Assembly (NCBI RefSeq): GCF_052425735.1
Contig: NC_135768.1
Coordinates: 6,882,001-6,946,000, forward strand
Source: Oculina patagonica
Taxonomy: Eukaryota
Length of the DNA: 64,000 nt
Reading direction: 5' to 3'
Part shown: positions 889-22,730 of the stretch, one piece after another
Position numbering within the stretch: the first letter of the stretch is position 1
Layout of the letters: every line of letters begins with the position of its first letter
The notes under the pieces: generated by a model
Told to the model about the DNA's origin: nothing
The model's database searches: none
The model's input: only the letters and a program-made list of their open reading frames with translations
Program-made: the position numbers and the translations under genes

Positions 889-1818
889 ATGAACATAGAG
901 CTTACTTTTCGCCTTGCTACACCGAGTGACTTCGACGAAATCCTGAAATTGTCAGAAGGAATCTACGATGGACTCGATTATCTTCCATTTAGATATCATA
1001 AGTGGATGAACATGGATAATTTAGCTGTTATGCTTGCTTATTGTGGCGAGAAACTCGTGGGTTTGATTGCGTGTTCCATTGTTGATCAAGGAAGAACAGC
1101 ACTCAGTCGAGCAGCACGTACTTTGGCAGAGTTTCGCGGACGAGGTGTTTATAAACAGCTATCACAAGCAATGAATGATTTCATACGAAAGCAATACCCA
1201 AGTGTATGCCGAGAACGATTCGCCGTCACGGGTCTGAAGAGTTTACCTGCGGAAACGAAATTTGTTCAGTTGGAAATGTTGAAATGTTACGCTAAAAAGA
1301 AGACATTTCTCTCCCGTCACTTTTCTACAACAAATAATTCCATTCAGATTGAAGCTTGCACTAAAGAATACCTATGCGATGTTATTTTCTCTAGCCCTGT
1401 GGCACAGAAATTGTTTTCAGACAGTTTTATCCTTCTGGAACTATTTCCTGTCGAACCTGTTCGATCAAATATCGATTACTTGCAGCAAGAAATCGACTTG
1501 TATTTCGCTGTCGAGAAATGTAGCAATGGTGCTTTTCCTCGATCGGTCAGCTTCGGTGTATTGTCGCCAAGAGTTAAATGTACGATTTGGTCTGTGTCTG
1601 TTTACACCAGTGATCCAGTTCTGTACGAAGCTCACCTTTTGTATCAATTGAAGCGAGCCTGTGAAGTTATCAAGGGTGATTTTATTTTGTACTTGTTTCA
1701 AGACGATTGTTTGAAAAACTACGGGAAGAGAGTGCTGGAAGAATTGTTACGAGTGGAATTAGATGAAGAGTTGTCCAAAATGTCAGTGAAAGTCTATGAA
1801 AACAATTTTCTTCCGTAA
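889..1818 (+). CDS. NAT16: NAT16/histidine N-acetyltransferase-like GNAT, copy 1 (intronless, 309 aa)
   Basis: N-terminus LTFRLA..DFDEILKLSEGIYDGLDYLPFRYHKW resembles the NAT16/HISAT signature (IYGGLDYLPSRYHSW). Acetyl-CoA motif A is EFRGRGV. First ATG at 889 (the ORF track starts at GTG 886). Confidence 0.88.
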   Translation: MNIELTFRLATPSDFDEILKLSEGIYDGLDYLPFRYHKWMNMDNLAVMLAYCGEKLVGLIACSIVDQGRTALSRAARTLAEFRGRGVYKQLSQAMNDFIRKQYPSVCRERFAVTGLKSLPAETKFVQLEMLKCYAKKKTFLSRHFSTTNNSIQIEACTKEYLCDVIFSSPVAQKLFSDSFILLELFPVEPVRSNIDYLQQEIDLYFAVEKCSNGAFPRSVSFGVLSPRVKCTIWSVSVYTSDPVLYEAHLLYQLKRACEVIKGDFILYLFQDDCLKNYGKRVLEELLRVELDEELSKMSVKVYENNFLP

Positions 1819-2837
1819 TGTCAACTTTTAAGACGGAACTGTATTTTACTTTTTTGTTGATATTTTTTATTGTGACTGCGTGACAGCTTTCACGAGGTCG
1901 TGTCAAAAATTGTTGCTAGAATTTTACAGCAGTATGGCGGCCTACGCGTGCCATAGTGAAATTAGACATTATTTCTCGTTCTTTTTGCATTTTTTAACTT
2001 TGCTGTATATATATTTTTTATTTTTATTGCTGTTTTACTTTTGAATAAAATACTTTTTTGTACATTACTTATTTATATGAAGAATGATTGTTGTTTCAAT
2101 CGAAAAACAGTTTTATTTGGTCTCAGTTTATTTTCAGTTTTATTTTGTTTCAGTTTAGTTTCAGTAACAACAGCATCATGGCCTATGAGGGCCATAGCCC
2201 ACAATGCAATGCACCCAAACAATCCTTTTCAATATGGCGGACTGTTCCTGTCACATCAGTACAGCTGTCAGTATGTCGCAAATTCATAGCAGCAAGCAAT
2301 CAAGCCTGTTTATTTACAAGACAAGTAGGTTTTACTTTACCTCACATGTTAAAAAACTGTAGACAGTAAAACAATGACATGTTGCATGAATGTTTGATGA
2401 CTCATACCTTAACGATCGACTAGTGTACTTGTGGTCAAATATTATTATACGCAGTGGCTATTACTGTGGGAGTCCACAATTTTCGTAAAATTTCTGGGTA
2501 ATTACTTATTTTTACCAATCCAAAATATGATATGTCTATTGAGATACAGTAACCGATTATATTGAGCACGGATAATTTGATTCACGAGGTCAATATGCTG
2601 CCCTCAGATAACATGAGTTCCACCATCCAAGTAAGACGTAATAATCTAGCACGAGGTCAATATACTGCCCTCAGATAACATGAGTACCCTACGGAACTCA
2701 CCATCCAAGTAAGATATAATAATCTAGCACCAGGTCAATATAATGCCTTCAGATAACACGAGTACCCTACGGAACTCACCATCCAAGTAAGATATAATAA
2801 TCTAGCACCAGGTCAATATGCTGCCTTCACATAACAT

Positions 2838-3588
2838 GGGACGTATACAAAACATGGACCCGGGTCCATGGACCACCCCTGTGGACCACCCCTAATTTTC
2901 GAAAGAAAATCAAAGTGTAGAATGGGGGCAGGGTATAAATTGATGGCAGGTACTAAAACACAAAACAAAGAAACGAAACCACCGAAAAGACCGAAACAAA
3001 ATTAGCGAAACCACCAAAACGACCAAAACCAAACGCCGGAAAGGGTTGAAACAAGCGAAATGAAACAAAATCACTAAAACCCATTACCATTAGCGAAAGC
3101 TAACCGTAAACAGGCTAACCTGAGCGTTATTCAGGCTAACCGAAGTGCTATTGAGGCTAACTGGAGTGCTATTTAGGCTAACTGGAGTGGCCAACCGGAG
3201 TGGAAGGCATGGAAGGTGCTCTCCGGTTTATAGACTGAATAGCACTCTGGTCAGCCTAACTAACACTCTGGTTAGCCTGTTTACGGTTAGCTTTACTTTA
3301 CGGTTAGTTTCGGTGATTTTGTCTTGTTGTCTATGCCACTCTTTTGGCCGTTTCGGTTGTTTCGGCGGTTTCGTTTTGATCGTTTTGGTGGTCTAGCTTG
3401 TTTCGGTCGTTTCTTTTCGGTGGTTTCATTTCGTTGTTTTGTGTTTTAGTACCTGCCGTCAATTTATACCCTGTCCCCATTCTACACTTTGATTTTCTTT
3501 CGAAAATTAGGGGTGGTCCGTGGACCGGGTCCACAAGGTGGTCCATGGACCGGGTCCACAGGGGTGGTCCATGTTTTGTATACGTCCC
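2838..3588. mobile_element. Foldback MITE (751 bp) with 7-bp TSD
   Basis: TIR gggacgtatacaaaacatggacc / ggtccatgttttgtatacgtccc; arms are imperfectly complementary over most of the length. Flanking direct repeat ataacat at 2831-2837 and 3589-3595. Confidence 0.92.
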
Positions 3589-5233
3589 ATAACATGAGTA
3601 CCCTACGGAACTCACCATCCAAGTAAGATATAATAATCTAGCACGAGGTCAATATGCTGCCCTCAGATAACATGAGTACCCTTACGGAACTCACCATCCA
3701 AGTAAGACATAATAATCTAGCACGAGGTCAATATACTGCCCTCAGATAACATGAGTGCCATTAGGAATTCACTATCCGAGGTAAAGATAGTAATCTAGCA
3801 CGAGGTCAATATGCTGCCCTCACTTAACATGAGTACCCTACGGAACTCACCATCCAAGTAAGATATAATAATCTAGCACGAGGTCAATATGCTTCCCTCA
3901 GATAACACGAGTTCCAAAAGGAACTCACCAACGAAATAAGACATAATAATTTAGCAAAAAATCAATTTGCTACCCTCAGATAACTTGACTTTCATAAGGA
4001 TCTCAGCAACCAAGTAAGACATAATAATCTAGCATGAGGTCAATATGCTGACCTTAGATCCAACGAGATCCATTAGGAACTCACCATCCAATTAAGACAT
4101 AATAATCTAGCACGAGGTCAATATGCTGCCCTCAGATAACATGAGTTCCATTAGAAACTCACCATCTAAGTAAGAGATAATAATCTAGTACGGGGTTAAA
4201 ATGCTGCCCTCAGATAACATGAGTTCTATAAGGTACTCACCATCGAAGTAAAACATAATAATCCAGCACGAGGTCACTTTCCTGCCTTAAGAAAACATGA
4301 GTTCCATAAGGAACTCACCTTTCAAGTAAGACATAATAATCTAGTACGAGGTCAATATGCTTCCCTCAGATAATATGAATTCCATAAGCTATTCACAATC
4401 CAAGTAAAACATAATAATCTAGCACGAGGTCAATATGCTGCCCTCAGATAACATGAGTTCCATTAGAAACTCACCATCGAAGTAAGACAAAATAATCTAG
4501 CACGAGGACACTATGCTGCCCTGTGATAACATGAGTTTCATAAGGAACTCACCATCCAAGTAAGACATAATAATCTAGCACGAGGTCAATATGCTGCCCT
4601 CAGATAACATGAGTTCCATTAGAAACTCACCATCGAAGTAAGACAAAATAATCTAGCACGAGGACACTATGCTGCCCTGTGATAACATGAGTTTCATAAG
4701 GAACTCACCATCCAAGTAAGACATAATAATCTAGCACGAGGTCAATATGCTGCCCTCAGATAACATGAGTTCAATTAGGAACTCACCATCCACGTAAGAC
4801 ATAATAATCTAGAACTAGAACGAGGTCAATATGCTGCACTCAGATAACATGAGTTCCATTAGGAACTCACCATCGAAATACAACATAATAATCTAGCACA
4901 GAGTCACATTGCTGCCTTCAGATAACATGAGTTCCATTAGGAACTCACCATCCAAATAAGACATAATAATCTAGCACGAGGTCAATATGCTGCCCATTAG
5001 ATAACAAGAGTTCCATTAGGTACTCTCCATTCAAATAAGACATAACAATCTAGCACGAGGACACTTTGCTGCCCTCAGATAACATCACTTCCATTAAGAA
5101 CCCATCATCCAAGTAAGACATAACAATGTAGCTGGGAGTTACTTTGCTGCCCTCAGATAACATGAGTTCCATTTAGAACTCACCACCCAAGTAAGTCATA
5201 ACAATCTAGAACGGGGTCAATATGCTGCCTTTA

Positions 5234-5778
5234 GGGCCTGATTACATGAGCCGGGCTGGCCCGGTTAGCCGGGCTGGCTCGGTTTGCCGAGATCTCGGCA
5301 CGTCTGTTAAACGCAACAAAAATCAACTTTGCGATTACATGACAACCGGGCCAGCCCGGCTAGCCGAGATCCCGGTATCGCGATGCCGGGATCTCGGCTA
5401 GCCGGGCTGAAAATTTTCCATGTAATCGCGTTCACCGGGCCAGCCCGGCTAAGCGGGCCAGCATTAAATTTCTCTTCTGAGCACAATATCCGACGAAAAA
5501 ATCAATGCAACTCCTTCTAAATAGGACGTAGAGGTAAAGTAACCCATCCAGATGCATAAGTGCAAAAAATTAACCACCAAATAATTTTTTTATTGCCGGA
5601 AAAAGGTGATTAAGATCATTCGTGCTCTGATCATTTATGCTAAAACCGGGCTGAAAGTCATCTCGGCAAACCGGGCCAGCCCGGCTAACCGGGCTCATGT
5701 AATACCGGGCTGAAAGTCATCTCGGCAAACCGAGCCAGCCCGGCTAACCGGGCCAGCCCGGCTCATGTAATCAGGCCC
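5234..5778. mobile_element. PIF/Harbinger-type MITE (TTA TSD)
   Basis: Long TIR gggcctgattacatgagccgggctggcccggttagccggg... / ...cccggctcatgtaatcaggccc, with TTA on both sides (5231-5233, 5779-5781). Confidence 0.9.
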
Positions 5779-6139
5779 TTAGACACAATAATCTAGCACG
5801 TGGCCAATATCTGCCCTTAGATAACATTTGTTCCATAAGGAACTCACTATGCAAGTAATTAAGACATAATAATTTAGCAGGAGTCAATATGCTGCACTCA
5901 GATAACAAGAGTTCCAATAGGAACTCACCATTCAAGTACGCAGTAGTGTTAGTAGATTCAACACGTTTGGGTTTCCTTCAGAATTGCCGGCCACAATTGC
6001 GCGAGATGAGAATATTGCTTATGCAGTCTTGAGGACAAGGTTATACAAAAAGTAAATAATCGCTCTCGCATTGGCAGTGCCAAAGTTACAATTTTATTTC
6101 TGGTTTGATATTATTAACAACTCCGAGGTTCCAACATTA

Positions 6140-6596
6140 TCGTTTTAGAGATATGATATCTGAAAGAAGGTGCTTATTTGGATAAATTTGATTTCGTCAC
6201 TCGATATGACCACTGCGGTTTCTGGCAACAAAATGTTTTAAATGAATAAATGCAGGCCAACATTTTATTTGAGTGGGTCTATTGAACAAATATATTTCAC
6301 TTTTAAGGCCCCTTAGAGTAAACGTTGTCTTTAACAATTGGATTTGCAAACGTTCAAAGAGCAAAATGCTGCAAAATTTGACTGATTCGATCGCGCGCGG
6401 GAAGAGAAAATGAAAAAATAATAAATTTCTAACATTCGGATTTGGTTCATTTTTTGTCAATCGGTAGAGATTTATCCCAACAGGTTATTTATCCCGAAAA
6501 AAATGGGGGTCACCGACCGTTTAAGAGAGCAAACTGCAAGCGGAGTTAACACAACGACTACTCACCCAATATGTGTTAGGAAAGATTTCTCAGCGC
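6140..6596 (+). repeat. Dispersed repeat fragment (DNA-transposon derived); second copy at ~37690-38218
   Basis: gatatctgaaagaagg...atatgtgttaggaaagatttctcagcgc aligns over ~450 bp with a CFAP70-intron copy, which is preceded by ttaaggacgttcgc (TTAA-flanked, Kolobok-like end). Confidence 0.8.
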
Positions 6597-6618
6597 GCGC
6601 GCTCGTGCATGACGTGGC

Positions 6619-7562
6619 GGAAGGGATCTACGAGAGGCACGACTATCAAGTAGATATCACAAGTGGATAAAGATGGACATGTTACATGTTATGCTCGCTC
6701 ATTATGGAGAGAAACTTGTGGGTTTGCTTGCGTGTTCCATTGTCGACGAAGGAAGAACAGCCATCCGTCGAGCAGGACGAACTTCAAAGGAGTTTCGTGG
6801 ACAAGGTGTTTATAAACAGCTATCACAGGCGATGAATGATTTCATACGAAGAAAATACCCAAAATGCAAGTGTACCGTATTTACTCGAATAAGCGCCCCC
6901 CCCCCCCCGAATAAGCGCCGCATTTCGGACAAATAAATTAGTAAGCGCCGCCCCCGAATAAGCGCTGCAGTCTCGATGCAGCGCTTATTGAAGGAAATCT
7001 GTTTTAATTAAAAACAACACTAGAAAGTAACTCTAAAACAAAACTTGGACATTTCTTTCCATGAAAAGCGATGTTTCGCAGTTCAAAGTGATTGTTTTAC
7101 CGCTCGCCCATTAGTTTTTCTATCCAACATTCTTACAATACGCAGTTCTGTAAACGTTGTGAAGGCAGCGAACTTTGCCAGGACAGCTAACGACACTTCT
7201 CTCTTCAGCAAGAGACAAATATTGGTAATCAAAAGACGTTATTTCAATTAATGTAAAGGATTAGATTCTTGGCGGCGTTGAAATTTTTAATTAGCGCCGC
7301 CCTCAAAAAAGCGCCGCCCTCGAATAAGCGCCGCACATGAGACGCGAAAAATTTAATAAGCGCCGCGGCGCTTATTCGAGTAAATACGGTATGCCGAGAA
7401 CGATTCGCCGTCGCGGGTCTGAAGAGTTTACCTGCGGAAACGAAATTTTTTCAGTTGGAAATGTTGAAATGTTACGCTAGAAAGAAGACATTACTCTCCC
7501 GTCACTTTTCTACGACAAATAATTCCATTCAGATTGAGGCTTGCACTAAAGAATACCTATGC
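6619..7562 (+). pseudogene. NAT16-like GNAT pseudogene, 5'- and 3'-truncated and split by a MITE
   Basis: EGIY..HDY remnant with a deletion, then MLAHYGEKLVGLLACSIVDEGRTAIRRAGRTSKEFRGQGV. MITE at 6875-7389. Segment 7392-7562 is nearly identical to copy 1 (1206-1377). Ends abruptly in a Crypton remnant. Confidence 0.9.
6875..7389. mobile_element. Tc1/mariner-pogo-type MITE (TA TSD)
   Basis: TA|ccgtatttactcgaataagcgcc ... ggcgcttattcgagtaaatacgg|TA with repeated subterminal aataagcgcc motifs. Removing it restores the GNAT sequence agtgTAtgccgag. Confidence 0.93.
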
Positions 7563-7994
7563 CGGATGAAAGGCATCTTAAAAGAAAGTCCTATCCAGTG
7601 AGCATCATTAATGACCTAGCATTTGAAAAAGTTAAGAAAAACACTCCAGTCTAAACAAAAGCAGCTCAAGAAACAGGGAAGAGGAAACAAGCCTAATGCA
7701 TCGGTGGCTCTAACAGAAGATAAAATAAAACTTCTCTTCGACAAAGGCCTCCTCGGTGTTTCAAGTCCTGAAGCCATTTTAAACACCCTGTGGCTGAACA
7801 ACTGCCTCCATTTTGGGCTACGAGGAGTAAAAGAGCACCACGACATGCGCTGGGGCGATGTAAAGTTGTGCAAAACAGACCAGGGTGTTGAATACTTGGA
7901 GTTCAATGAGCTCCATTTGAACGAAAAAAAGAACTGGCGCCGACCACCGCGATGTGAGACCCTTCGCACCAAAAATGTTTTCAACGGATGGTAG
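7563..7994 (+). mobile_element. Crypton-type tyrosine recombinase (DUF3504/KIAA1958-like) remnant
   Basis: Translation ERHLKRK.YPVSIINDLAFEKLRKTLQSKQKQLKKQGRGNKPNASVALTEDKIKLLFDKGLLGVSSPEAILNTLWLNNCLHFGLRGVKEHHDMRWGD, including the FGLRG..EH catalytic-Arg region. Frameshifted and truncated. Confidence 0.85.
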
Positions 7995-10609
7995 CAAACA
8001 ATAGAAATCAACACGGAAGTCTGAAAATCTTCCCCGGAAGTAAACCAAACCGGAAACCCTGGAAAAACATTTTTTTGTTTTCCATGGTCAAATGTTCAGA
8101 AGTATCAGCTTAATTTTGTAAAAACACCTAAGAAATCGTGATACGGTGCTACATAAATGAAGTATTTTCTAATTCTACCCTTCTCTTTGAACGTAAAAGA
8201 TACCATGAATAAAAAAAATGCATATGGACTTCCTTTAAGCGTCGATACTGAACGGAGATTTAAAACAACAAACGACGGCGTCACCAAGGACAAGGTCGAT
8301 TGAAAACTCAATTTATAGTTGAATTACAAATCTCGCTAGAACTACTGTTTTCATTCAAATCGCCGTTCCAGTTGAAAAACTGAATATGGCAGACAGTGCA
8401 CGATTCAAAATAATTACTAATGACGCAGAATTTGAACATTACGCGTTGTTGTTTCGCTGAAGAAAAAGAATTGAACAAAAATTATAACACACGTGTGCAC
8501 GTGTTGAGTTGCAAAAATGCTAATTACGCCTTTTCAATAGCGTTGACCGGTGTGCATGTGGCCTTTAACGTCTTTATTAATATCACCGCCATTCGACGAG
8601 GAAAAAATTGTTTGCTCGAAAACATGCAACCTATCCTGAAAAAATGCGCTTTCAGCGAGAAGCCTTTCCAATATACAAAAGTTACCAAACAAAAATATAC
8701 GAAAGTCGCCAAACAATTTTTTTTATGAACAGAACAATAGCTTGTCCGTGCGTTGTGCATTATGTAAATTTCTTAGCCGTCCTCTGCAAAACAACAACGG
8801 ACACACGCACGCAGTCTTCACAGACGGAATCCTGGAAGGCTAGCAACACCTTTGGTTTAAAACAAATATAGCAGAATGCTCAAGAAAGAGACTAAAGGAA
8901 ATACAAACACCAGACGCTATTTTGTTAACTCTCTCTTTAGTTAACTGCAGGACGTTATTGTTACTTTTGTTGCTTCAATAAACACAAGTTCAGTCGATAC
9001 TGTGTTAGAAATACTGTAGTTCAACTTTTTCGATTTACTTCCGTTCTGGGAAATTTACTTCCGCTAAGAACTACGAGCATGCGCAATAAAAACCGGAAGA
9101 CCAAGGTTCTTCCTGAAATCGACCTGAAATTTATCTGATCCATTCCAGTTTCCCAGAGTCCATCCCATACCGCTGACCGACAAGATGGACTCTGGGCTCG
9201 AGATTGTGATGACCTTGGACAGTGCTCAGTGGGAGTTTGGGAGATTGGGAACCACATATGATGACGCAATATTTGCCACATTTTATGTGACGAGTCGTCT
9301 AAACGAGCAATTTTCGTAAGTGACCACTTTTATTTGTCACATAAAAGCTAACACGCCAACTTGTCGACAAATATATTTGTCTACTCGAGCAAATGAAAAT
9401 TGTCACATAAAAATTACTCCCAATCAGGCTTTGTTGTGTGGCCATGAGGGGTTAATAGTTTCAGATGAAATCGTTCGTTCGCCCAGAGAGCATATGAAAC
9501 TTCACTAGTATTACCTAGCATGATGTGCTAGCCTGTTCAAGGCGTTCCATTTTGCTAACGATATGCCGGCATCGCTGCTCTTTCTGACATAACAAAATTT
9601 TTTAGATAATTTGTTTTTCTTCGAGACACCGTTTTCGACATTTTTTATCACGACTTTACAAGTCTTGGTATTTGGGTTTACTGTAACAACTGACGAAAAT
9701 GATGACTAGCAGAGGTTCAGTTTTGGTTCTCGTTGAAATACATTCTTAACTTCCATACTCAAAAGGTTCTTTATGTTCTCGTGGCAAAAACGATATCTCA
9801 CTCGTTCGCTACGCTCAGTCGTGAGATATCGTTTCTGCCGCTCGAACCTAAAATTCATATCTTCTCGCCACCGTGTAATATCCTCTATACATTAACTTAC
9901 AATAGTAGAGCATATTCACTGCCGAACACTGCTTTATTGTCAAAAATAATCCAAATGACCTTGGTCACGCTATCAATAAAATAGTTGGGACTACCTCAGG
10001 ACGTAGCCTCCCAGATCCTACGCGGACGTTCTTTTGACTCGTCATGCAATTTTTCCTTGAGAAGGAAAGATTTCGTGAGGAGCCTAAAAAACTTCATTCA
10101 ATGTCACACACAATGGATCTTTAAAGAAAAACAATCACAAACTGCTGATCGGCCAATGCAGGCAAACCAATTCCTCACAATAAGTACTATCCTTGCAAAC
10201 TTAAAAATATCAGTAATTGCCAATGAAACTTTTGTATTTATACTAAAATACTAATCAAATGAATCCATGTCGCCAGAAACCTCTTCCACCGTGACATCTC
10301 TAATGAGTCACTAATGTGCAGAATTTTACAAAAAGCTTTATGCATGACAAAGACAACGAGCGTGACGAATGACGTCACCTCATCGGGCTGACATGACATT
10401 AAAAAAAAAAACAAAAACAAAATATGTTTACGTTGGGAAAATAATCCCCAGATGAACATGTTTATTATTTTTTCAAGAAATGCCTCACGAAATATGTTTA
10501 AGGAAGAGTTTCAGTGCTTCTAGATAGCCAAATTTCTGGAGGGCATGTCACCAGAACCTCCCAGCAAGATTTTGCCACGTCTATGTCAAAGATCTGGTTA
10601 CGGCCCTGA

Positions 10610-11539
10610 CTAAAGGTGACTTTGCTGCATCACATCTTCTTCGTACAAATTCACGGGTAGCTCTTCACCAAATTCTACCTGCAGCTTTTCCTTTAACACT
10701 CGTTTACCATGGTACGTCAAACTTTTGTCGTGAAAAGAATGGAAGATAAAATCGCCTTTGATAACTTCACAGGCTCGCTTCAATTGATGCAAAAGATGAG
10801 CTTCATACAGGACTGGATCACTGGTGTAAACAGTCACAGACCAATGTACTATTTTCACTCTGGGAGATAATAAACCAAAACTTACTGATCTGGGTAAAGC
10901 ACCATCGATGCATCTCTCCACAGCGAAGTACACATCGTTTTCCGTCGTTAAGAAATCGATGTTCGATCGTATAGGCTCAATAGGGATTTTTTCCACGAGA
11001 ATGATGTTATCTGGAAACAGTTTTTGTGCTACAGTTGTAGAAAAAACAGCATCACAGAGGTACTCCTTAGTGCATGCATTGATCTGAACGGAATTATTTG
11101 TGACGTGGAACTGACACGAGCGTAGAGTACCCTTTACTACAGGAAAGCTCAAAACATCTTGGTGCGCAATTTTTCTTAGCGATGGATAAAATCTCTCCCT
11201 CGCTAATAGTTGTCGGTAAACGTTTGGGAAATGTCTTCGAACGACCTCATTCCTTATCGCTTGAAGTATTCCTTTAGTTACACCTTGGCCGCGAAACTCC
11301 TTCAAAGTGCGTCCTGCTCGGGCAACCCACGTCCGTCCATCGTCGACAACAGAACACGCAACCAAACCAACAAGTTTATCTCCATAATAAGCAAGCATAA
11401 CAGCAACATTTTTCATCTTCATCCACGTATGGTATCTAAATGGAAGATAGTCGTGTCCATCGTAAATTCCTTCTGACAATTTCAGGATCTCGTCGAAGTC
11501 ATTCGGCCTAGCGAGGCGGAAAGTCAGCTCTACGTTCAT
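10610..11539 (-). CDS. NAT16: NAT16-like GNAT, copy 2 (309 aa from first ATG; C-terminal SHL)
   Basis: MNVELTFRLARPNDFDEILKLSEGIYDGHDYLPFRYHTW, motif A EFRGQGV, full-length colinear with copies 1 and 3. The frame stays open upstream to an acceptor-like ctctctattttgatcag at 11613, so an upstream exon is possible. Confidence 0.88.
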   Translation of the reverse strand: MNVELTFRLARPNDFDEILKLSEGIYDGHDYLPFRYHTWMKMKNVAVMLAYYGDKLVGLVACSVVDDGRTWVARAGRTLKEFRGQGVTKGILQAIRNEVVRRHFPNVYRQLLARERFYPSLRKIAHQDVLSFPVVKGTLRSCQFHVTNNSVQINACTKEYLCDAVFSTTVAQKLFPDNIILVEKIPIEPIRSNIDFLTTENDVYFAVERCIDGALPRSVSFGLLSPRVKIVHWSVTVYTSDPVLYEAHLLHQLKRACEVIKGDFIFHSFHDKSLTYHGKRVLKEKLQVEFGEELPVNLYEEDVMQQSHL

Positions 11540-11759
11540 CTTAGACTCGCCTGCCGAATCGCCGACCGGTACACCTTTTTTGTCTTTAATAATAGCAACT
11601 CCTTGCTTAGCACTGATCAAAATAGAGAGTTACCAGTGTGTGGCTAAACTATAGCCCAAAATAAGTCAGTTGATCTAGCGAGTTGGACAATAAACTCTAG
11701 CTATTTTAATTCATCGATTAACTTGTTGTATATGTCATGTCCTTTGTTATTAAAATAGT

Positions 11760-11936
11760 CAAACCCACAAGTTTCGAGCAACAAAAAGCAAGCATCACAT
11801 CTAACTTGTCCATGTTCATCCACGTATGGTATCTCAATGGTAGATAGTCGTGTCCATCGTAGATCCCTTCTGATAATTTCAGGATCTCTTCGAAGTCACC
11901 CGATGTGGCGAGGCGAAAGGTCAACTCTAGGTTCAT
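11760..11936 (-). pseudogene. 5' fragment of a NAT16-like GNAT (~59 codons)
   Basis: MNLELTFRLATSGDFEEILKLSEGIYDGHDYLPLRYHTWMNMDKLDVMLAFCCSKLVGL; homology then stops before motif A. Confidence 0.85.
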
Positions 11937-12650
11937 CACTAAACTCTCAATTCTTTCAACTTCTCTTCAGTTTTTTATCAAAAACAATGCAACCCTCGCT
12001 TCGCTGGATCTCGAATGATATGATAAAATTGATATGGTAAAATTTGTCACGCTTGGTGGCTTTTTCATGCAATTGTGCAATATAGTAAAAAACCCGCGAG
12101 TAAAAACTTAACATTTAATAACCTGTTAGGCTGAAACTGGCAAATTGGACTCTATTTTTTTGAGTACCTATTTAGCCTAGAATTCGAAAACAGGTTCAGT
12201 CTTATTTTCTAAAATTGATTAAAAATGCTTACTTTGGGAAAATAAGTTTGGACAAGGCTAAACTACATGAATACAAAGTCATGTTCTGAATGATAAGTGC
12301 TTCATTTTTGCATAAACACTTGTGTGGTATGCAAACTTACTACAAATAAAAGGCCGAATATCACTTAAAGCTCTATTACAACAATGTTAATTTTTTCTTA
12401 CAAAATATTAACCTAAATAGCCTAAATTTGTGTTAACTACCATTTATGCAGTTAGTTTGCAAGTTTTTTGCGTTCCAGAAATTAATCGGAGGGCTATAAA
12501 ATAAATTAATAAATAAACCCCTTCTGGCTTGCTGATATATTGGTGGATTATGCCCTTGACATTACGGCCTCGAAGCTTTGCTTCATTTTTCCGACAATCC
12601 CTCAGCCTCGGACATTATCCTTCAATATACCAGCCGCCTGAAGAGGCCTA

Positions 12651-12813
12651 CAGTTAACTCTCTCCTAGCGGACACCTCGCTATTACGGACACCCCGTTAT
12701 TACTGACAGGAATTGAAGCCCCGGCGAATAAGAATTACTGAAAATAACTCTCGTTACTACGGACTTCCTGTATAACGGACACCAAATGGTGGTCCCGAAG
12801 GTGTCCGTTACTG
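12651..12813. mobile_element. Degenerate Tc1/mariner(Tigger)-like MITE
   Basis: TA|cagttaactctc... with repeated (t/a)acggacacc motifs, ending ggtgtccgtta-ctg|TA. Confidence 0.55.
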
Positions 12814-13073
12814 TAAACCCAACGCCGAGTTAACTTCGATAAACACTCGAGTTGTATTACAAGCCTGTGAAGTTATCGATGGCGATTATAGACACATTCT
12901 TCTTTGTTTGCTTCACTTACGATGCGTTAATCTGAGCTGTTATGCAAATTTTGCGACTGCCGGAGGACATTTTGTTTTTTAATTTAAGTTGGCTGGGTAT
13001 TATGAATTCCGCGGAGTCCCAATTTCTAAAGTCCTCGATTTTTCGAAAGTCCGCCCAGTTACTCGAACTAGTA

Positions 13074-13853
13074 ATGTCCGACAGCAAGTTCGCCGCGGAT
13101 TACCAGCGAGTCTCTGCATCCGTTCAGAGAGGAGATGGAAAACAATTGATTGAAAAACTTTCGCAGCGCCTTGGAGACGCCATCTTGGATTTGGGTTGTG
13201 GTACTGGCGAGCTATCTGTTTATCTTGCTGAGCTTGTAGGACAAGATGGCAAAGTTGTGGCTGTTGATCCTGACATCAATCGAATTAAAGTGGCCCAGGA
13301 ATCTCACAAGGGAGTCAAAAACGTCACGTTTGTCGAAGGGAGCGCTGCCAACTTTCCCGGAATGGGTTCGGACACTTACGACATCATTTTCTCGAATTTA
13401 GTTCTGCACTGGATTCCGGATAAAGGACAGGCCTTCAAGAACATGTTTAGCAGTCTTAAACCAAACGGAAAAATTGCTCTGCATTATTATGACCGCCTAA
13501 CCGATGTAGTGGACCTTGCATTTCGTGAACTCAATCCAGAAAATTTGCAGCGTATACTTAATATGTATCACTTCAAATCTAGAGCAGAAGTTGACGAGAT
13601 GTGCATAGCGGCTGGATTTGACATTGTGGAGAGTTACTACGAGGAAATTGATCGCGAGTTCGAAAACTGTGAGAGTCTATGCTCATTACTACAGGCAACT
13701 ACACATGGCGCATTTGATCCACGGCTAGCGACGGAAGAAAGACTAACACGATTTTGCAGGCACTATGCGAGCAAAGAGGAGGCGACGTTGAGAATTTGTG
13801 ACAAAGAGGGTGACACCCGCAGCACATTGATTGCAGCTAAACCGGCCCTCTAG
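13074..13853 (+). CDS. Class I SAM-dependent small-molecule methyltransferase (Methyltransf_11/31; Tam/BioC/JHAMT-like), intronless, 259 aa
   Basis: Motif I ILDLGCGTG, post-I VVAVD, motif II YDIIFSNLVLHW, motif III LKPNGKI. ATG 13074 (MSDSKF) preferred over the upstream in-frame ATGs at 12942/13002. Confidence 0.88.
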   Translation: MSDSKFAADYQRVSASVQRGDGKQLIEKLSQRLGDAILDLGCGTGELSVYLAELVGQDGKVVAVDPDINRIKVAQESHKGVKNVTFVEGSAANFPGMGSDTYDIIFSNLVLHWIPDKGQAFKNMFSSLKPNGKIALHYYDRLTDVVDLAFRELNPENLQRILNMYHFKSRAEVDEMCIAAGFDIVESYYEEIDREFENCESLCSLLQATTHGAFDPRLATEERLTRFCRHYASKEEATLRICDKEGDTRSTLIAAKPAL

Positions 13854-14296
13854 GGCCTGCTCTGTTTATTTCGAATATCGACCGAGTGTTAAATTGCTTT
13901 GTTGCACAATTTACGGTCTCTTGATACTTACGATAAGAAAAATAGTTTCTGTTAAGAACTATACCTATTTATTCTGACTACAGTGCACAAAAAATACCCT
14001 GACTGCAAATGAATACTTTATTGGGTATTTTTTTTTTCATTATTCCCACTATTTTATGTAGTAGAGTTTGTATCAAAAGTTAATTCTATTGTTTGATTTG
14101 TATTGGGTTTACAGTTGTGTACATGCGATCTGAATACTGTGCTGGGATTGGTTTGCAACCGCATGAATATGTAATGAATTTTACAACTTTAGTTACTTCT
14201 TACTTAGTGGTTGACAGGATTATAAAGCCATTCAATTATAAGCCATTCAATAAAACGCTAACCACATGTGTAATGCCGCTGAAAAACATTGACTAT

Positions 14297-15081
14297 TTAA
14301 CAAATAGATTCCATTTTGCCGTGCGTCTGTTCAGTTATAGATCACAGATGACGTCAAAATGTGGTATGAACAGAGAAGTGGCCCACGAGGCGCTAGCCGA
14401 GTGGGTCACTGATGTTCATACCACATTTTGACGTCTTCTGTAAACTATAACTGAACAGACCCACGGCAAAATGGAATCTATTTGTTTTATATAATAACAC
14501 AAGACTTCGGCACACTTCAGTTTGAGCAATGCCGCCGTAAAGGTGAGCTAAGTTGTTTTGATTTCACTATTAAGTTTTCGTTAACACGAAGCACTGTTAA
14601 TCCGATTGAATAAACAGAAAAAATGGTCAATTGAAAGTCAATGAAAAAACTAACCTTTATTCCGATTTGGAAAGTTGTTCAAATCTGTAAGCATTAACCG
14701 AAGCGTTCAACCGCAATTCGTTTGGTTCCCGTGGCGTCGTCCAACTGTACAACATCGGTCAAACTTTCATACAGATTTCGGATAATTTCTCGAATAATTC
14801 ACTGTCTTCTTCAAGCTTGTTTCGCCCAGTTAAATGCTTCGAAAGGTGAACGATGCTTGGCGTATTGTTTCTCACTTAAGATTTGTAATTAAGCTGAACT
14901 TTTTTGCTTTGTTGTGGCCCCGCAAGTTTGAAAAACTTTGCCGACAACTCTAATTTGGACTATGAACTCTGATCACGCGCGCGAGTCACACCACCGCGTG
15001 ACGTCATCCATGTGTCTGTACTCTAATAGATCATAAGTAAGAACCAATCAAAATGCGCGTAGAATTCAGGTTATTATATAA
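14297..15081 (-). mobile_element. Non-autonomous element: terminal ~188-bp hairpin + inverted-repeat-bounded body
   Basis: Hairpin 14299-14486; IR ttatataataac (14487-14498) / gttattatataa (15070-15081); CCAAT at ~15044. Confidence 0.75.
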
Positions 15082-15482
15082 AAACTAGTAAAGCATATAT
15101 CAGAAAACAGTGTCAGCTCAAAGGGACATCCAAATTTATTGCCATGGTGCTCATAGCCATCTTAAATTTGTAAATAAAAAACATAGCTGTGAATCCTGAA
15201 ACACATATTTTTTAGAAATTTGTAAAAATGTTTGTTATGTTGATTAAAAAAAAATTACCAAATCTTCTTTTAACGTTACCACGGCAACGTATTTCGACGC
15301 AAACCTCGCCTCAGTTAATTCAAAAATATGAGCTAAAAGTTGTTCCTTGACCTAATTGTTGTAGCTGTGACAAAATACCAAAGACGGCAATGTCTAAACA
15401 GATACGAGCCATTTAAAAACAGAGAAATTGACACATATCTGCCCCCCTCCCTTTCGCTTCGTTTATCATCAGTTGAGTATAA

Positions 15483-16238
15483 AGGCCCGGCCAAACGCAC
15501 GCAACATTTCACGCAACATATCCCAACATTGTTCCGCACAGCATGTTGCAATCGTTTGGCCACCTTGTTGCAACAAGTTGCAACATGTTGGATGATGTTG
15601 GACCAAGTTTGAAAATAGTCAAATTTTTCTCCCAACATCTTGCAACATTTTTGGATGTTGCATGATGTTGTACTCGTTTGGCCACGTTCGTGCAACATTG
15701 TTGCGCTGGAGCATGCGCACTAGTTCGATTTGCGCCATCACAAAATCCAGCTCCCAGTTGGCTTGATAGCTCAGTTGGTTAGAGCGCTGCACTAGTATCG
15801 CAGAGGTCATGGGTTCGATTCCCGTTCAAGCCTGAATTTTTTTTCAGGCTTGCTTTTCTCAACTGCTTAAGTTGAGTACATTACTGCGATGATCTTTCAT
15901 TTGCTTAAAATACTGCAACATATCGCGACAGGGTGGCCAAACGCGTGCAACATGTAGTGCACAACAATGTTGCGATATGTTGCGTTTTTAAAATTTACTT
16001 ATTAACTTTTTTAATACAAACTTATTTATCTTCACATTTAGAATTTCTCTTTTTTGTTTGCGTGTTCCCAATTAGCAGCAATGCTAAATACCCCAGACAC
16101 GTTTAATATTAAGGTTTTATTGTTGTTGTTGTTGAAATGTTGCGCGCGTTTAGCCAGCTGCTTCACAACATCTCACAACATGACCCAACATTGTTGGGAT
16201 ATGTTGCGTTGAGATGTTGCGTGCGTTTGGCCGGGCCT
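15483..16238. mobile_element. PIF/Harbinger-type MITE (TAA TSD) with nested insertions
   Basis: TAA|aggcccggccaaacgcacgcaacat ... atgttgcgtgcgtttggccgggcct|TAA with many caacat/atgttg subrepeats. Carries a tRNA-like insert and a (TTG)n-tailed insert (~15986-16133). Confidence 0.9.
15760..15833 (+). tRNA. tRNA-Thr(AGT)-like sequence, most likely the head of a tRNA-derived SINE/pseudo-tRNA
   Basis: Acceptor stem GGCTTGA/TCAAGCC, A-box TAGCTCAGTTGG, B-box GGTTCGATTCC, anticodon loop CT-AGT-AT with an A:C mismatch in the stem. Followed by a cctgaa-T8-caggc tail and nested in a MITE. Confidence 0.6.
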
Positions 16239-16377
16239 TAACAGCTGTTATGCAAATTTTGACCTTGAACAGCTGTTGGACTTGAATATAAATGGCCGGG
16301 TGATATGAATTCAGTGGAGTTTCAAAGGTTGTTTCGCTAGGATTTTATTTCAATTCGTCGAACAATGCAATTTTACA

Positions 16378-16568
16378 CCCAAGTGACTTCGACGAAATTT
16401 AAAATTTTCAGAAGGGATTTACGATGGACTTGATTATCTTCCACTTAAAGACGTCTTTAATAATGATGAACTTAGAGCTAACGTTTCGGCTCGCTGTACC
16501 AAGTGACTTCGACGAAATTTTAAACATTTTCAGAAGTGATTTACGATGGACTTACAATGGACTTGATT
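16378..16568 (+). pseudogene. Two scrambled 5' fragments of NAT16-like copy 3
   Basis: ccaagtgacttcgacgaaatt...gattatcttccact (16378-16446) and atgatgaacttagagctaacgtttcggctcgct...ggacttgatt (16463-16568), both frameshifted. Confidence 0.85.
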
Positions 16569-16802
16569 GCGTGCGTTTGGCCGGGCTTTAACAGCTGTTA
16601 TGCAAATTTTGACCTTGAACAGCTGTTGGACTTGAATATAAATGGGCCGGGTGATATGAATTCAGTGGAGTCTCAAAGGTTGTTTCGCTAGGATTTTATT
16701 TCAATTAGTCGAACAATGCAATTTTACACCCCGATTTCTTGAAACAATTTTCCTTTCCCTTGCATGTTTCAGAAATCGAGTTTACATTGCATAGCGCAAA
16801 AA

Positions 16803-16912
16803 ACGTCCGAAAACAAGCACGCCGAGGATTACCAGCGGGTTCTGCATCCGTTCGGAGAGGAGGCGGAAAACATTAAATTGAAAAAGTAACAACGCGCCTT
16901 AAAGACGTCTTC
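16803..16912 (+). pseudogene. Decayed copy of the methyltransferase 5' coding region, now the leader of GNAT copy 3
   Basis: ACGTCCGAAAACAAGCACGCCGAGGATTACCAGCGGGT-TCTGCATCCGTTCGGAGAGGAGGCGGAAAACA aligns with 13074 ATGTCCGACAGCAAGTTCGCCGCGGATTACCAGCGAGTCTCTGCATCCGTTCAGAGAGGAGATGGAAAACA (ATG to ACG, 1-nt deletion). Confidence 0.9.
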
Positions 16913-16913
16913 A

Positions 16914-17858
16914 ATGATGACCTTAGAGCTAACTTTCCGGCTCGCTGTACCGAGTGATTTCGACGAAATTTTAAAATTTTCAGAGGGGATCTACGATGGA
17001 CTTGATTATCTGCCACTAAGATACCATGCGTGGATGAAGATGGACAAGATGGATGTTATGCTTGCTTATTATGGAGAGACACTTGTGGGTTTGCTTGCGT
17101 GTTCCATTGTAGACGATGAAAGGACAGTAATCTTTCGAGCAGGACGTACTTTAACGACGTTTCGCGGGCAAGGTGTTTATACCCAGCTATCACAAGCGAT
17201 GAATGAGTTCATACGAAGACAATACTCAAGTGTATGTCGAGAACGATCAGTTAGTCTAAAGAGTTTACATGCAGTAACGAGACTAACGAAACTTGTGCAG
17301 TTTGATATGTTGAAATCTTACGCTAAAAAGAATTTATGCTCGCATCACTTTTCTACAACTAATAATTCCATCCAAATTGAAGCTTGCACTAAAGAATACC
17401 TATGCAATGTTATTTTCTTGAGCCCTCAGGCGCAGACATTGTTCCCAGATAATGTCATCATCTTGGATTTTTTCCCAATGGAGCCTCTACGATCAAATAT
17501 CGATTACTGGCAGCAAGAAAACGAGTTGTACTTTGCTGTCGAGAAATGTAGCGATGGCGCTATTCCAAAATCGGTCAGCTTCGGTGTACTGTCGCCAAGA
17601 GCAAAATGTGTTCAATGGTCTGTGACTGTTTACACCAGTGATCCAGTTCTGTATGAAGCTCATCTTTTGTATCAATTCAAGCGAGCCTGCGAAGTTGTTA
17701 AAGGAGATTTCAGTTTTGACACGTTTCAAGATAAACGTTTAACAAACTACGGGAGAAGAGTGCTACAAGAACGATTGCAGCTGGAATTGGATGAACAGAT
17801 GTCCAAAATGTCAGTGGAACTGTACGAGGCGCGGTTCTTTCAGCAAATTCATCTTTAA
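16914..17858 (+). CDS. NAT16: NAT16-like GNAT, copy 3 (intronless, 314 aa)
   Basis: MMTLELTFRLAVPSDFDEILKFSEGIYDGLDYLPLRYHAW, motif A TFRGQGV; closest to copy 1. Confidence 0.88.
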   Translation: MMTLELTFRLAVPSDFDEILKFSEGIYDGLDYLPLRYHAWMKMDKMDVMLAYYGETLVGLLACSIVDDERTVIFRAGRTLTTFRGQGVYTQLSQAMNEFIRRQYSSVCRERSVSLKSLHAVTRLTKLVQFDMLKSYAKKNLCSHHFSTTNNSIQIEACTKEYLCNVIFLSPQAQTLFPDNVIILDFFPMEPLRSNIDYWQQENELYFAVEKCSDGAIPKSVSFGVLSPRAKCVQWSVTVYTSDPVLYEAHLLYQFKRACEVVKGDFSFDTFQDKRLTNYGRRVLQERLQLELDEQMSKMSVELYEARFFQQIHL

Positions 17859-18641
17859 ATGACAATAAATTCGTAGAAGCTTGCATATGACATATAGGCC
17901 TGAACGATACATACCATACGTTTACATTCGCATTTAGAACGTCACATGACAAAAAGGAATCAAAACTAGAAAAAGAATCGTAACCCTCGGACGTACAAGC
18001 AAACTCATCCCCCCACCATCGTACAAGGGCTAGATTGATTGTCTTAATTTAGACATAATGTAAAAGAAAGTTGTAAATAGGTAATTGTAACTTGGATTGA
18101 CAAATCCATATTATACCAGGGCCAGAGGCCTGCCAGTATAATTGAAATTATATAAACAAACGAAATGAGAAATATATGAGTCCTTACCCTCAAACCTAGT
18201 CTCTACCTTCCTTACACCGCGTAAAAAGATGCAAGAGGATCATGGGACCATGTACTTGTACAGGGGCACTATGGGATTGTGTCATCTTTAAGCCTGTCCC
18301 CGGTAGGGTCAGGCTTTGTTATGTGTTAAAAAATGGTTCGAAGCACAATAAGCGGAATTCTACCTGATGTTCTGTCATATATTTCGAACGGAGTTTGTAT
18401 AATATCATCCTCTTTGGGAGTTCAATAAACGTACGTATGATTCATTCGCGTACCGGCTACTGACAAAACGAGAGCGATTGAATTTGTACATTTGAGGTAG
18501 TTCTTACTATATACCTACATGGCTAAGTAAGCCTGATGGTTATTCCCTCATTATGACCAGTGTTAAGCAAGTGCAGGCTAGTATTTTTAGTAAAGAAAAA
18601 GATCAATTGGACCTGAGCGACAGGGCTTAGGAGCGAATACC

Positions 18642-20999: not shown

Positions 21000-21570
21000 G
21001 AGAATGGCTTCGATCATCTTTTCCAAGTTAACTGCTAAACTATCTTCACAAAAGCCCGACAGCAACCCTTGCCTTCACCTCAAAGCCAGTAAAGTTGCAT
21101 TGAAGCACGAAGGGTGGTTTCGATCAGCTTTTCAGGGCTAACTTTGTGTCCATCTTTACTAAACTCTTACCAGTTCTCGCCATCACTGAATTTTTGAAGT
21201 TCATTTGTGTTGAATCACAAAGGGTGGTTTCGATCATCTAAACCGTTAAGCCTGGCAACCTCTTGCCTTGTAAGCTCACCCTCCAGAAAAAAAAAATGTC
21301 CACCTTTTCCTCCACCGAGTATCTCAACTTCAGCAAAAAACTCGAAGGGTGGTTTCAATCGTCTTTTCAGATTTAATTTTTCAGCCACTTGTCACAAAGC
21401 CTGATCAACTCCCGCCTTCACCAAGTATCTCAAAGTTCAGCTGTATTGAAGCAGGGAAGGTGGTTTCAATCATCTTTTTAGAGTTAATGTTTCAACGATT
21501 GTCGCACAAGCCTGAAAAGAACTTTCGCCTCCACTTAATACCTCACAGTGTAGTTGTATCAAAGTATGGT
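21000..21570. repeat. Degenerate ~110-bp tandem repeat overlapping the GPCR stop codon/3' UTR
   Basis: (aag)ggtggtttc(g/a)atc..ctttt recurs at ~21005, 21111, 21220, 21346 and 21457. Confidence 0.7.
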
Positions 21571-22730
21571 CTTTCCGTTCTACCACTTTGATTAGTCGTC
21601 TGACTCCCCTCTTGAGGGTGTACTTGATTGATGTTGAGCCGGGGGCAGATCTTTCCACAACAGCAGCTCAGAGTTTGCCTCAAAATATGCAAGTAGCCGG
21701 CTCGAAAGTTCTGATTGAAAATTGGATAGATGTACGGCGTGATGGCGCTGTTAGAATAGGACATGAAATACCTGATGAAAGCAAAACTAACGCTGTTGCA
21801 GAAGCCCGGAGCTGGCACAGTTAAGCAACCGGCGATAGCAACCCAAGAAGGCATCCAGCAAATACAGAACACAATCACTACCGTTGTAAGCATGGATATC
21901 ACTTTACGGTTAACCGTACGGTTGCGGGCGGTGCCAGAAGCCGTCTGATTCCCAGGGGTTCTTCTAGTGCACATTTTCACCCCAATAGCAGTGTATAGGG
22001 CTATCGTGGCGGTAAGAGGAATTCCCTGCGTGAAGACGAAGTCACAGATTAAATAAGTATGGTAGTTTTCCGAAGTTTTTAGAAGATCTCTTATAAGGGC
22101 ATTAGCACAGTATGTTTTTCCGTTTATGTCGATAAGTATGGCGTAGTGGAACGGCAGGTAGTAACAGCAGCATGGCAGAACCCAGGTGAAGATGATTATT
22201 GCAGCCATTATTTTTCCGGTCATTGGGCGTCGAAGCGGGAAGAACACGGCTAAGAATCTACCCAAGGCGATGAACGCAAAACTCAAAGTGGAAACAAGCA
22301 GTGAGATAAAAGGTACTGCGCTGTTGATTTTGCACGTGAGAAGGCCAAAGGTTCCACCGACGAGCCACTCATAACCCACAAGTACGATGGAGATCAATCG
22401 TGGCACATTACATATAGTAATAAGCAGATCTGCGAAACAGAGATTTACAATCAGGTAGTTGCTCAGTGTTCGCATTCGCCTGTTAACATTCTGGTAAACC
22501 GAGCCGATGGTCAGAGAATTGCCGACGAGAGAAAACACTATGACAATAGCGCAGGCTAGGACTTTGAAAACTGTTGAAGTCAAGGGTTCCTGGACAAAGA
22601 GAACAAACTGATTTCTCCCAGTGGGAAGCGTCCCGTTTCCATTTCCGTGAGTCCAGTTCGCTGATCCATTAGCAAAATCTGCAAAACCTGCAGTGGAGGA
22701 CTCGAAAAACGTTTCGTTCACGAAGCTCAT
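21543..22730 (-). CDS. Intronless class A (rhodopsin-like) GPCR, neuropeptide-receptor-like (395 aa)
   Basis: N-glycosylated N-terminus, seven hydrophobic segments, TM1 GNSL, TM2 LCFADL, TM3 Cys, TM4 W, TM6 CWMP, helix 8 NQNFR. DRY is GRF and NPxxY is TPYIY. Confidence 0.9.
   Translation of the reverse strand: MSFVNETFFESSTAGFADFANGSANWTHGNGNGTLPTGRNQFVLFVQEPLTSTVFKVLACAIVIVFSLVGNSLTIGSVYQNVNRRMRTLSNYLIVNLCFADLLITICNVPRLISIVLVGYEWLVGGTFGLLTCKINSAVPFISLLVSTLSFAFIALGRFLAVFFPLRRPMTGKIMAAIIIFTWVLPCCCYYLPFHYAILIDINGKTYCANALIRDLLKTSENYHTYLICDFVFTQGIPLTATIALYTAIGVKMCTRRTPGNQTASGTARNRTVNRKVISMLTTVVIVFCICWMPSWVAIAGCLTVPAPGFCNSVSFAFIRYFMSYSNSAITPYIYPIFNQNFRAGYLHILRQTLSCCCGKICPRLNINQVHPQEGSQTTNQSGRTERPYFDTTTL

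Follow-up and report, generated by a model that had tools for sequence, protein, structure and literature searches.

A tandem array of HisAT/NAT16-type acyltransferase genes with a probably co-inherited methyltransferase gene in the stony coral Oculina patagonica

The window analyzed here is a 64,000-nucleotide stretch of the Oculina patagonica genome (NCBI RefSeq assembly GCF_052425735.1, contig NC_135768.1, positions 6,882,001 to 6,946,000 of the forward strand) that contains five intact GNAT genes (G1-G5) of the HisAT/NAT16 double-GNAT type and, between G2 and G3, a gene for a class I S-adenosylmethionine (SAM)-dependent methyltransferase (MT). The locus appears to belong to an extensive tandem array of intronless HisAT/NAT16-type genes that is actively duplicating in this scleractinian coral, and the adjacency of MT and GNAT genes is best read as inherited by descent. 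The GNAT copies are predicted, from conserved residues, to be free amino-acid N-alpha-acyltransferases; the residue that stacks against the substrate side chain differs by subfamily, with Leu in G1, Lys in G2 and Phe in G3, so that the paralogues probably acylate different amino acids, with the histidine-type Trp kept only by the distal pair G4 and G5. It is proposed that a single MT, from a large cnidarian MT family with the Gln/His pair of JHAMT, entered the array once and was thereafter inherited and segmentally duplicated along with its GNAT neighbors; the ancestral 5' flank of the MT, with 37 initial codons, would have become fused ahead of G3 as the array was rearranged. This account, of diversified amino-acid acyltransferases with a co-inherited MT in which adjacency is inherited and coupling of the enzymes is hypothetical, is considered probable.

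Genes were located by listing open reading frames (ORFs) and by tblastn with the window's own proteins, with Pfam used for domains and self-blastn for repeats; the window sequence contains no runs of N. The original prediction, made from the sequence alone, described three intact intronless GNATs, a pseudogene, several fragments and an intronless MT within 17 kb, and two further GNATs beyond; ORFs, tblastn and Pfam bear out the first set (G1-G3 and the MT are all intronless), and tblastn and the Hisat_C domain (PF24066) bear out the distal two as G4 and G5. Against Hisat_C the five proteins score 60-72 bits at a cut-off of 27, with E values of ~1e-16 to 1e-17 for G1-G3. A profile of 33 coral GNATs matches human NAT16 chains at E 1e-27, and the AlphaFold model of G1 (predicted local distance difference test, pLDDT, 89.3) has as its best PDB matches the human HisAT structures 9emd, 9en3 and 9emp, with template modeling (TM) scores of 0.85-0.86 (E 2e-26) and the next ones at TM <=0.62; a hairpin at residues 181-188 of the model corresponds to the beta7-beta8 hairpin of HisAT. 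The HisAT/NAT16 type claimed for these GNATs is therefore confirmed by both Hisat_C and structure (G1 model against 9EMD, TM 0.86). The GNAT family, a relative of vertebrate NAT16, occurs throughout scleractinian genomes; homologues of GNAT and MT number in the hundreds in scleractinians, including Stylophora, Orbicella and Porites. The ratio of nonsynonymous to synonymous substitution (dN/dS) lies between 0.23 and 0.46 in all pairs compared, which indicates functional genes under moderate constraint. G4 and G5 also carry an N-terminal extension of ~30 residues (53350-53445 and 58973-59068, respectively) that G1-G3 do not have.

In human HisAT the histidine ring is stacked between Tyr74 and Trp246, the latter being the sole second-domain residue in contact with the substrate; the substrate carboxylate is bound by Tyr74, Tyr79 and the Gly123 amide, coenzyme A (CoA) is contacted by Arg131, Gly134 and Ala136, and longer acyl-CoAs are also accepted (PMC12219266). 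These contacts were mapped through a hidden Markov model alignment, a pairwise alignment with G5 and a family alignment of 117 sequences; a smaller alignment, A1, holds 33 sequences. Of the 117 family members, 109 have Tyr74 and 114 have Tyr79, and both carboxylate tyrosines are present in G1, G2, G3 and G5, with Asn at the Tyr79 position of G4. The acyl-CoA motif is stable in A1 (Arg131 in 32 of 33 sequences, Gly134 in all 33); G4 displays His at the Arg131 position. The Trp246-equivalent is Leu185 in G1, Lys184 in G2 and Phe186 in G3, and Trp occurs only in G4 and G5, so that the imidazole-stacking feature is absent from G1-G3; as the window's only copies with the histidine-type Trp, G4 and G5 may be canonical HisAT orthologues. 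Across the family this position takes 11 residue types through ~25 changes on the tree and is constant within subclades: His is found in 11 of the 12 members of one clade, and Phe, Ser, Tyr and Leu each characterize other clades. Such clade-specific changes on a fixed amino-acid-binding scaffold would be the pattern expected of substrate diversification; the residues point to amino-acid N-acyltransferases with diversified side-chain specificity.

The region after motif A had been singled out as the most divergent between paralogues and as consistent with substrate diversification. The divergence was recovered at G1 residues 111-150, where 0-5 of 10 columns are identical among G1-G3 (0-2 over 111-140) and parsimony change counts on the 117-sequence tree are highest. 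The first position of this block aligns with human Thr160, which contacts the substrate amine through its backbone, and the block continues through a lower-confidence inter-domain linker; much of its variability may therefore reflect weak constraint. Substrate diversification is likewise supported, and more clearly at the Trp246-equivalent (Leu, Lys and Phe against Trp) than in the linker to which the prediction pointed. A C-terminus resembling the type 1 peroxisomal targeting signal (PTS1) is found in nine of 113 coral GNATs (-SHL in G2 and its relatives) and in no MT; general peroxisomal targeting was rejected on these counts, the PTS1-like end being no feature of the family.

The MT displays an invariant motif I (LDLGCGTG) and matches Methyltransf_31, Methyltransf_25 and Methyltransf_11, which places it in the class I SAM-dependent fold. 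The closest full-length folds to its model (pLDDT 89.6) are the trans-aconitate methyltransferase Tam (TM 0.77), Bombyx JHAMT (0.74), BioC (0.70-0.74) and further carboxyl O-methyltransferases, and the comparison with the PDB entries of JHAMT and Tam gives TM ~0.70; at the sequence level, plant phosphoethanolamine N-methyltransferases are the top-scoring matches to the SAM core. Catalysis in JHAMT depends on a pair formed by a Gln of the N-terminal helix and a His, with an adjacent Trp (PMC8526772). In a profile alignment with JHAMT 9un4, Gln18 (codon 13125-13127) and His112-Trp113 (13407-13412) of the MT align with these residues, and among 34 coral homologues Gln18, His112 and Trp113 are conserved in 33, 33 and 31, respectively. 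The fold neighbors and the retained Gln/His pair agree with the Tam/BioC/JHAMT type proposed from the sequence, and the MT is considered to be a putative JHAMT-type carboxyl O-methyltransferase. The family has hundreds of coral members, which lie mostly in MT-only arrays. Only four clade-specific substitutions distinguish the GNAT-linked clade from the rest; these were examined as a signature of neofunctionalization and are too few to interpret. Apart from two cnidarian clusters, the ESM Atlas clusters most similar to the MT family all consist of class I methyltransferases from bacteria or archaea; an old bacteria-to-cnidarian transfer of this intronless family is a lead.

All four members of the linked MT clade with enough flanking sequence sit among GNATs, namely the window MT and those of three further loci (L001, L003 and L004), from at least three assemblies. 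L001, on the same chromosome, contains the closest MT paralogue (83% identity) with three GNATs on each side and is a rearranged segmental paralogue of the window; its two counterparts of G2 are 90-93% identical to that gene. In L003 (ENA ERZ25067872) a G1-like GNAT lies 1 kb upstream of an MT that is truncated, ending after about residue 158 with the Trp lost. L004, a Tara scaffold, has the order GNAT(-), MT(+), GNAT(+); its G2-like GNAT beside the MT (4060-4989) keeps the -SHL end and has a single in-frame stop, and is either a recent pseudogene or the product of a sequence error. The divergent GNAT(-)/MT(+) pair recurs in the window, L001 and L004, with a spacer of 1.1-1.5 kb in the window and L004. 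In a tree of 120 sequences the GNAT-linked MTs and two on short contigs form one clade with a Shimodaira-Hasegawa-like approximate likelihood ratio test (SH-aLRT) value of 99, and the linkage therefore has one origin; the two, P0038 and P0003, have no GNAT on contigs of 5.5 and 2.6 kb, too short to count either way. Other MT clades are found in MT-only arrays.

Between the window and L001 the synonymous distance (dS) is 0.246 for the MT pair and 0.226 for the G1 pair; MT and G1 were therefore duplicated together as a block. These data indicate that an MT was inserted into the array once and then passed on, with some decay, to species at dS ~0.45-0.7, a pattern that is compatible with selection for linkage and does not demonstrate it. 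Synteny of the two gene types had been proposed as a check: linkage occurs in the three further loci, with the linked MTs in one clade, and no MT lies within 10 kb of the GNAT arrays L005 (from the assembly that also contains L003), L006 and L013. Metagenomes from the JGI yielded only MTs of 58% identity on short contigs, without GNATs, and the literature searched on coral N-acetylhistidine, coral histidine N-acetyltransferase and cnidarian JHAMT provided nothing on this locus. In L006 (3409-7254) a G1/G3-like GNAT adjoins cytochrome P450 exons, not a methyltransferase.

The original prediction also claimed that the two enzyme families had exchanged DNA, with an MT leader in front of G3 and a GNAT remnant in front of the MT. 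The leader is real: self-blastn aligns 13073-13179, the first ~35 MT codons, with 16802-16907 at 79% identity (E 4e-19), ending 6 bp before the G3 ATG, and alignment of 16720-16925 with MT-gene 5' regions from other loci shows MT 5' flank and ~37 codons extending up to that ATG, such that the junction is exact and MT-derived DNA abuts the GNAT start codon. The relic (16720-16913) is 83% identical to L001 9928-10106 by blastn and has decayed: its ATG now reads ACG, one base pair has been deleted and a stop codon lies in frame. Its flank is shared with the MTs of L001 and L008, whereas that of the window MT has no homology to it; it is therefore G3, and not the MT, that now follows the ancestral MT upstream DNA. 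The second half of the claim is only partly upheld. A GNAT remnant does lie 1.1 kb upstream of the MT; however, this minus-strand piece is a tandem copy of part of a GNAT 5' end, sits just upstream of G2 and has a counterpart in L001 at 5570-5806, and so does not really represent exchange between the enzyme families. Retroposition of the window MT was considered as well and is not supported, the 3' boundary having no poly-A tail.

Expression was assessed in assembled contigs of four public runs, whose RNA label is a guess, by comparison with the region 12000-17900 (5,901 letters). The MT coding region has a word depth of 9-44 in three of the four runs (contigs over 13182-13772) and is without signal in the remaining one; part of the G2 words also occur in these runs. 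No contig words cover G3 and the relic upstream of it (16334-17121) in any of the four, except for words in a conserved block of G3 (17516-17712) that paralogues could supply. The co-regulation that had been proposed is not supported by this low MT signal and the lack of signal over G3 or the captured MT 5' flank; the contigs are too weak a basis for excluding it. Flanking the MT on either side, blocks 12400-12984, 13970-15151 and 15743-15939 have very high contig depth in all four runs with many loose ends, and behave as expressed interspersed repeats.

Inheritance by descent is supported by the MT-free GNAT arrays L005, L006 and L013, by the MT paralogues in MT-only arrays and by the truncated MT of L003. 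Several observations weigh against it. The MT stays between GNATs in four loci despite heavy rearrangement (orientation changes, pseudogenes and transposon inserts), the divergent pair recurs in three of these loci, and an MT 5' flank now precedes a GNAT; persistent embedding, a recurrent divergent pair and an MT flank at a GNAT would be expected if selection holds the pair together. On the side of the acyltransferases, substrate assignments come from residue homology only, and variation at the Trp246-equivalent, a column that ranks only 74 of 309 in variability, could result partly from relaxed constraint. It is hypothesized, as a rival, that the locus is a two-enzyme metabolic cluster in which a GNAT N-acylates a free amino acid and the JHAMT-type MT methyl-esterifies the remaining carboxylate, with selection and partly shared regulatory DNA keeping the genes together; the products would be neutral N-acyl amino-acid methyl esters with amino-acid cores set by the GNAT paralogue. 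The adjacency is chemically compatible with this sequence of N-acylation and then esterification, and since HisAT-type enzymes need a free carboxylate, the order GNAT first and MT second would be sensible; the HisAT-type product still offers its carboxylate to a carboxyl MT with the Gln/His pair, and the use of longer acyl-CoAs by human HisAT is in keeping with it. Linkage kept in four loci from at least three assemblies within a single MT clade, co-duplication of MT and GNATs, the divergent pair with its 1.1-1.5 kb spacer in the window and L004, and the MT flank directly before G3 also argue for such a cluster. However, no direct co-expression was seen, in that across the four runs the MT gives a weak signal and G3 with its upstream region none. 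Of the GNAT arrays examined outside the lineage, most are free of any MT within 10 kb; in L003 the MT is a truncated pseudogene, and in the window it no longer has the ancestral 5' flank. A single MT would also be required to serve GNATs whose side-chain pockets differ greatly, and the PTS1-like -SHL end is found on some GNATs and on no MT. A selected two-enzyme cluster is thus rather unlikely, and the clustered, possibly co-regulated N-acyl/methyl pathway of the original prediction survives in its linkage, enzyme types and residue diversification and is not supported in its co-regulation, with the MT-free arrays, the truncated L003 MT and the single origin of the linkage counting against it.

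It has also been considered that the MT is a passenger of an unrelated pathway, acting for example on farnesoic-acid-like sesquiterpenoids or other carboxylic acids, with the MT fragment at G3 as the scar of a duplication breakpoint. This possibility, judged somewhat short of an even chance, largely overlaps the favored explanation, which itself leaves the MT substrate open. It would account for a family of hundreds of coral sequences mostly in MT-only arrays, for catalytic residues conserved family-wide with four clade-specific substitutions alone setting the linked clade apart, and for the decayed state of the relic, which lacks transcription in the four runs; the persistent embedding and co-duplication of the MT with GNATs are less easily reconciled with it. 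That the intronless genes are viral or mobile-element cargo, and not host metabolic genes, is extremely improbable. All of the genes are intronless, and the flanks contain many transposon fragments, the DUF3504 ORF and repeats of very high RNA contig depth; yet a profile scan of 2.9 million viral contigs found no relative of the GNAT family, on which ground cargo was rejected, the family occurs across scleractinian genomes and is related to vertebrate NAT16, GC content is flat at ~0.40 throughout the window, and GNATs lie on both sides of ordinary host genes. Descent of the array with a co-inherited MT is therefore retained as the favored explanation, under which the substrates, the reaction order and any coupling of the enzymes are all putative.

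Table 1. GNAT and MT genes, gene remains and an associated element in the window (positions counted from its first letter)
Feature	Position	Strand	Description
G1	889-1818	+	Intact intronless HisAT-type double-GNAT, 309 aa; Trp246-equivalent Leu185 (codon 1441-1443); Hisat_C E 2.4e-16
GNAT pseudogene	6620-7595	+	Pieces 6620-6862 and 7389-7595 in different frames, with a 526-bp insert between them
DUF3504 ORF	7623-7991	+	E 7e-10; directly 3' of the GNAT pseudogene
G2	10610-11539	-	Intact GNAT, 309 aa; Trp246-equivalent Lys184 (codon 10988-10990); C-terminus -SHL
GNAT 5' remnant	11759-11946	-	~60 codons, between G2 and MT; blastn 84.6% to G1, 82% to G2
MT	12942-13853 (ORF); 13074-13853 (from conserved Met at 13074)	+	Class I SAM methyltransferase, 259 aa; Pfam Methyltransf_31/25/11
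Two GNAT 5' scraps	16374-16553	+	From local duplications of the G3 start region
MT gene relic	16720-16913	+	MT 5' flank and ~37 codons; ends at the G3 ATG
G3	16914-17858	+	Intact GNAT, 314 aa; Trp246-equivalent Phe186 (codon 17469-17471)
G4	53350-54417	+	Distal GNAT, 355 aa; Trp215 kept (codon 53992-53994); Asn at the Tyr79 position
G5	58973-60010	+	Distal GNAT, 345 aa; Trp214 kept (codon 59612-59614), both tyrosines, DWxPYxP motif as in human HisAT

The two enzyme classes are adjacent, with 1.5 kb from the MT to the start of G2 and 3.1 kb to the start of G3 (Table 1). The start of G2 was set at the ATG aligned with other GNAT starts; the mechanical ORF reaches a TTG at 11620. Near the start of G3, 16217-16380 and 16567-16731 are duplicates of 97.6% identity. 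The GNAT pseudogene is missing the first ~22 and last ~138 codons; its pieces correspond to G1 residues 32-104 and 105-171 at 75-80% identity by tblastn, and to G1 at 81% and 96.6% by blastn. The DUF3504 ORF is probably part of the mobile element that disrupted it. Between G1 and the pseudogene there is a satellite array of ~78-bp units with ~80-85% identity at 2583-5234 and 5781-5938, including an inverted segment at 2836-3590. The interval from the GNAT/MT block to the distal GNATs contains an intronless rhodopsin-family G-protein-coupled receptor gene (21543-22730, minus strand; 7tm_1 E 4e-32) and a multi-exon gene that is putatively CFAP70. The low-complexity Asp/Asn-rich repeat at 26235-26900 has long ORFs in several frames and is probably no gene. 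At 62105-63034 (minus strand) a 308-aa ORF is predicted to contain a concanavalin-A-like/Laminin_G_3 domain (E 1.5e-11); a weaker Pfam match to a lectin-like receptor-binding domain family probably reflects mere shared fold.

Human HisAT/NAT16 was only recently assigned a function and a structure, and acetylhistidine still has no clear role. Corals contain dozens of intronless HisAT paralogues in which the carboxylate and CoA residues are fixed and the second-domain side-chain contact varies by clade; these would be a natural series for understanding how the fold selects its amino acid, and they suggest an unexplored pool of N-acyl amino acids in reef builders. It can be speculated further that stony corals make neutral N-acyl amino-acid methyl esters, with HisAT-type enzymes choosing the amino acid via the hairpin residue that replaces Trp246 and the co-inherited JHAMT-type MT capping the carboxylate, as a compact, evolvable two-enzyme cluster for diffusible signaling or defense compounds; this is more doubtful still than the selected cluster discussed above. 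If the MT does act on GNAT products, the locus would be among very few animal-encoded multi-enzyme small-molecule clusters and simple to reconstitute.

Cnidarian biosynthetic clusters are known for mycosporine-like amino acids in corals and anemones and for terpenes in octocorals, with demonstrated products and co-expression. The present locus resembles these in having different small-molecule enzyme classes side by side in a cnidarian genome; it differs in that the evidence here consists only of adjacency, single origin and co-duplication, and in that most of the locus is one tandem family. The MT shares with insect JHAMT (7EBX, 7EC0, 9UN4) and bacterial Tam and BioC the class I SAM fold and the same cap architecture (TM 0.74-0.77), and with JHAMT the Gln of the N-terminal helix and the His-Trp motif; however, identity to these enzymes is only ~20%, the family is expanded in corals, the SAM-core sequence scores higher against plant phosphoethanolamine N-methyltransferases, and the likeness is one of fold and catalytic residues. 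Mammalian peroxisomal ACNAT and BAAT, which conjugate acyl-CoAs to free amino acids, have a PTS1 end and a thioesterase-like fold; G2 and its relatives are similar in their PTS1-like -SHL end and differ in their GNAT fold and in the restriction of such an end to nine of 113 coral GNATs. The closest known system is human and fish HisAT (NAT16; 9EMD, 9EMO, 9EN3; PF24066), with which the coral enzymes, known here from sequence and models alone, share the double-GNAT fold (TM 0.86), Arg131 and Gly134, Tyr74 and Tyr79, and Hisat_C; the Trp246 hairpin motif DWxPYxP is shared by G4 and G5 only. Unlike HisAT, G1-G3 have Leu, Lys and Phe in place of Trp246, the beta-bulge Gly123 is changed to Ala in most coral copies, and the coral genes lack introns and have multiplied to at least 15 copies within ~125 kb.

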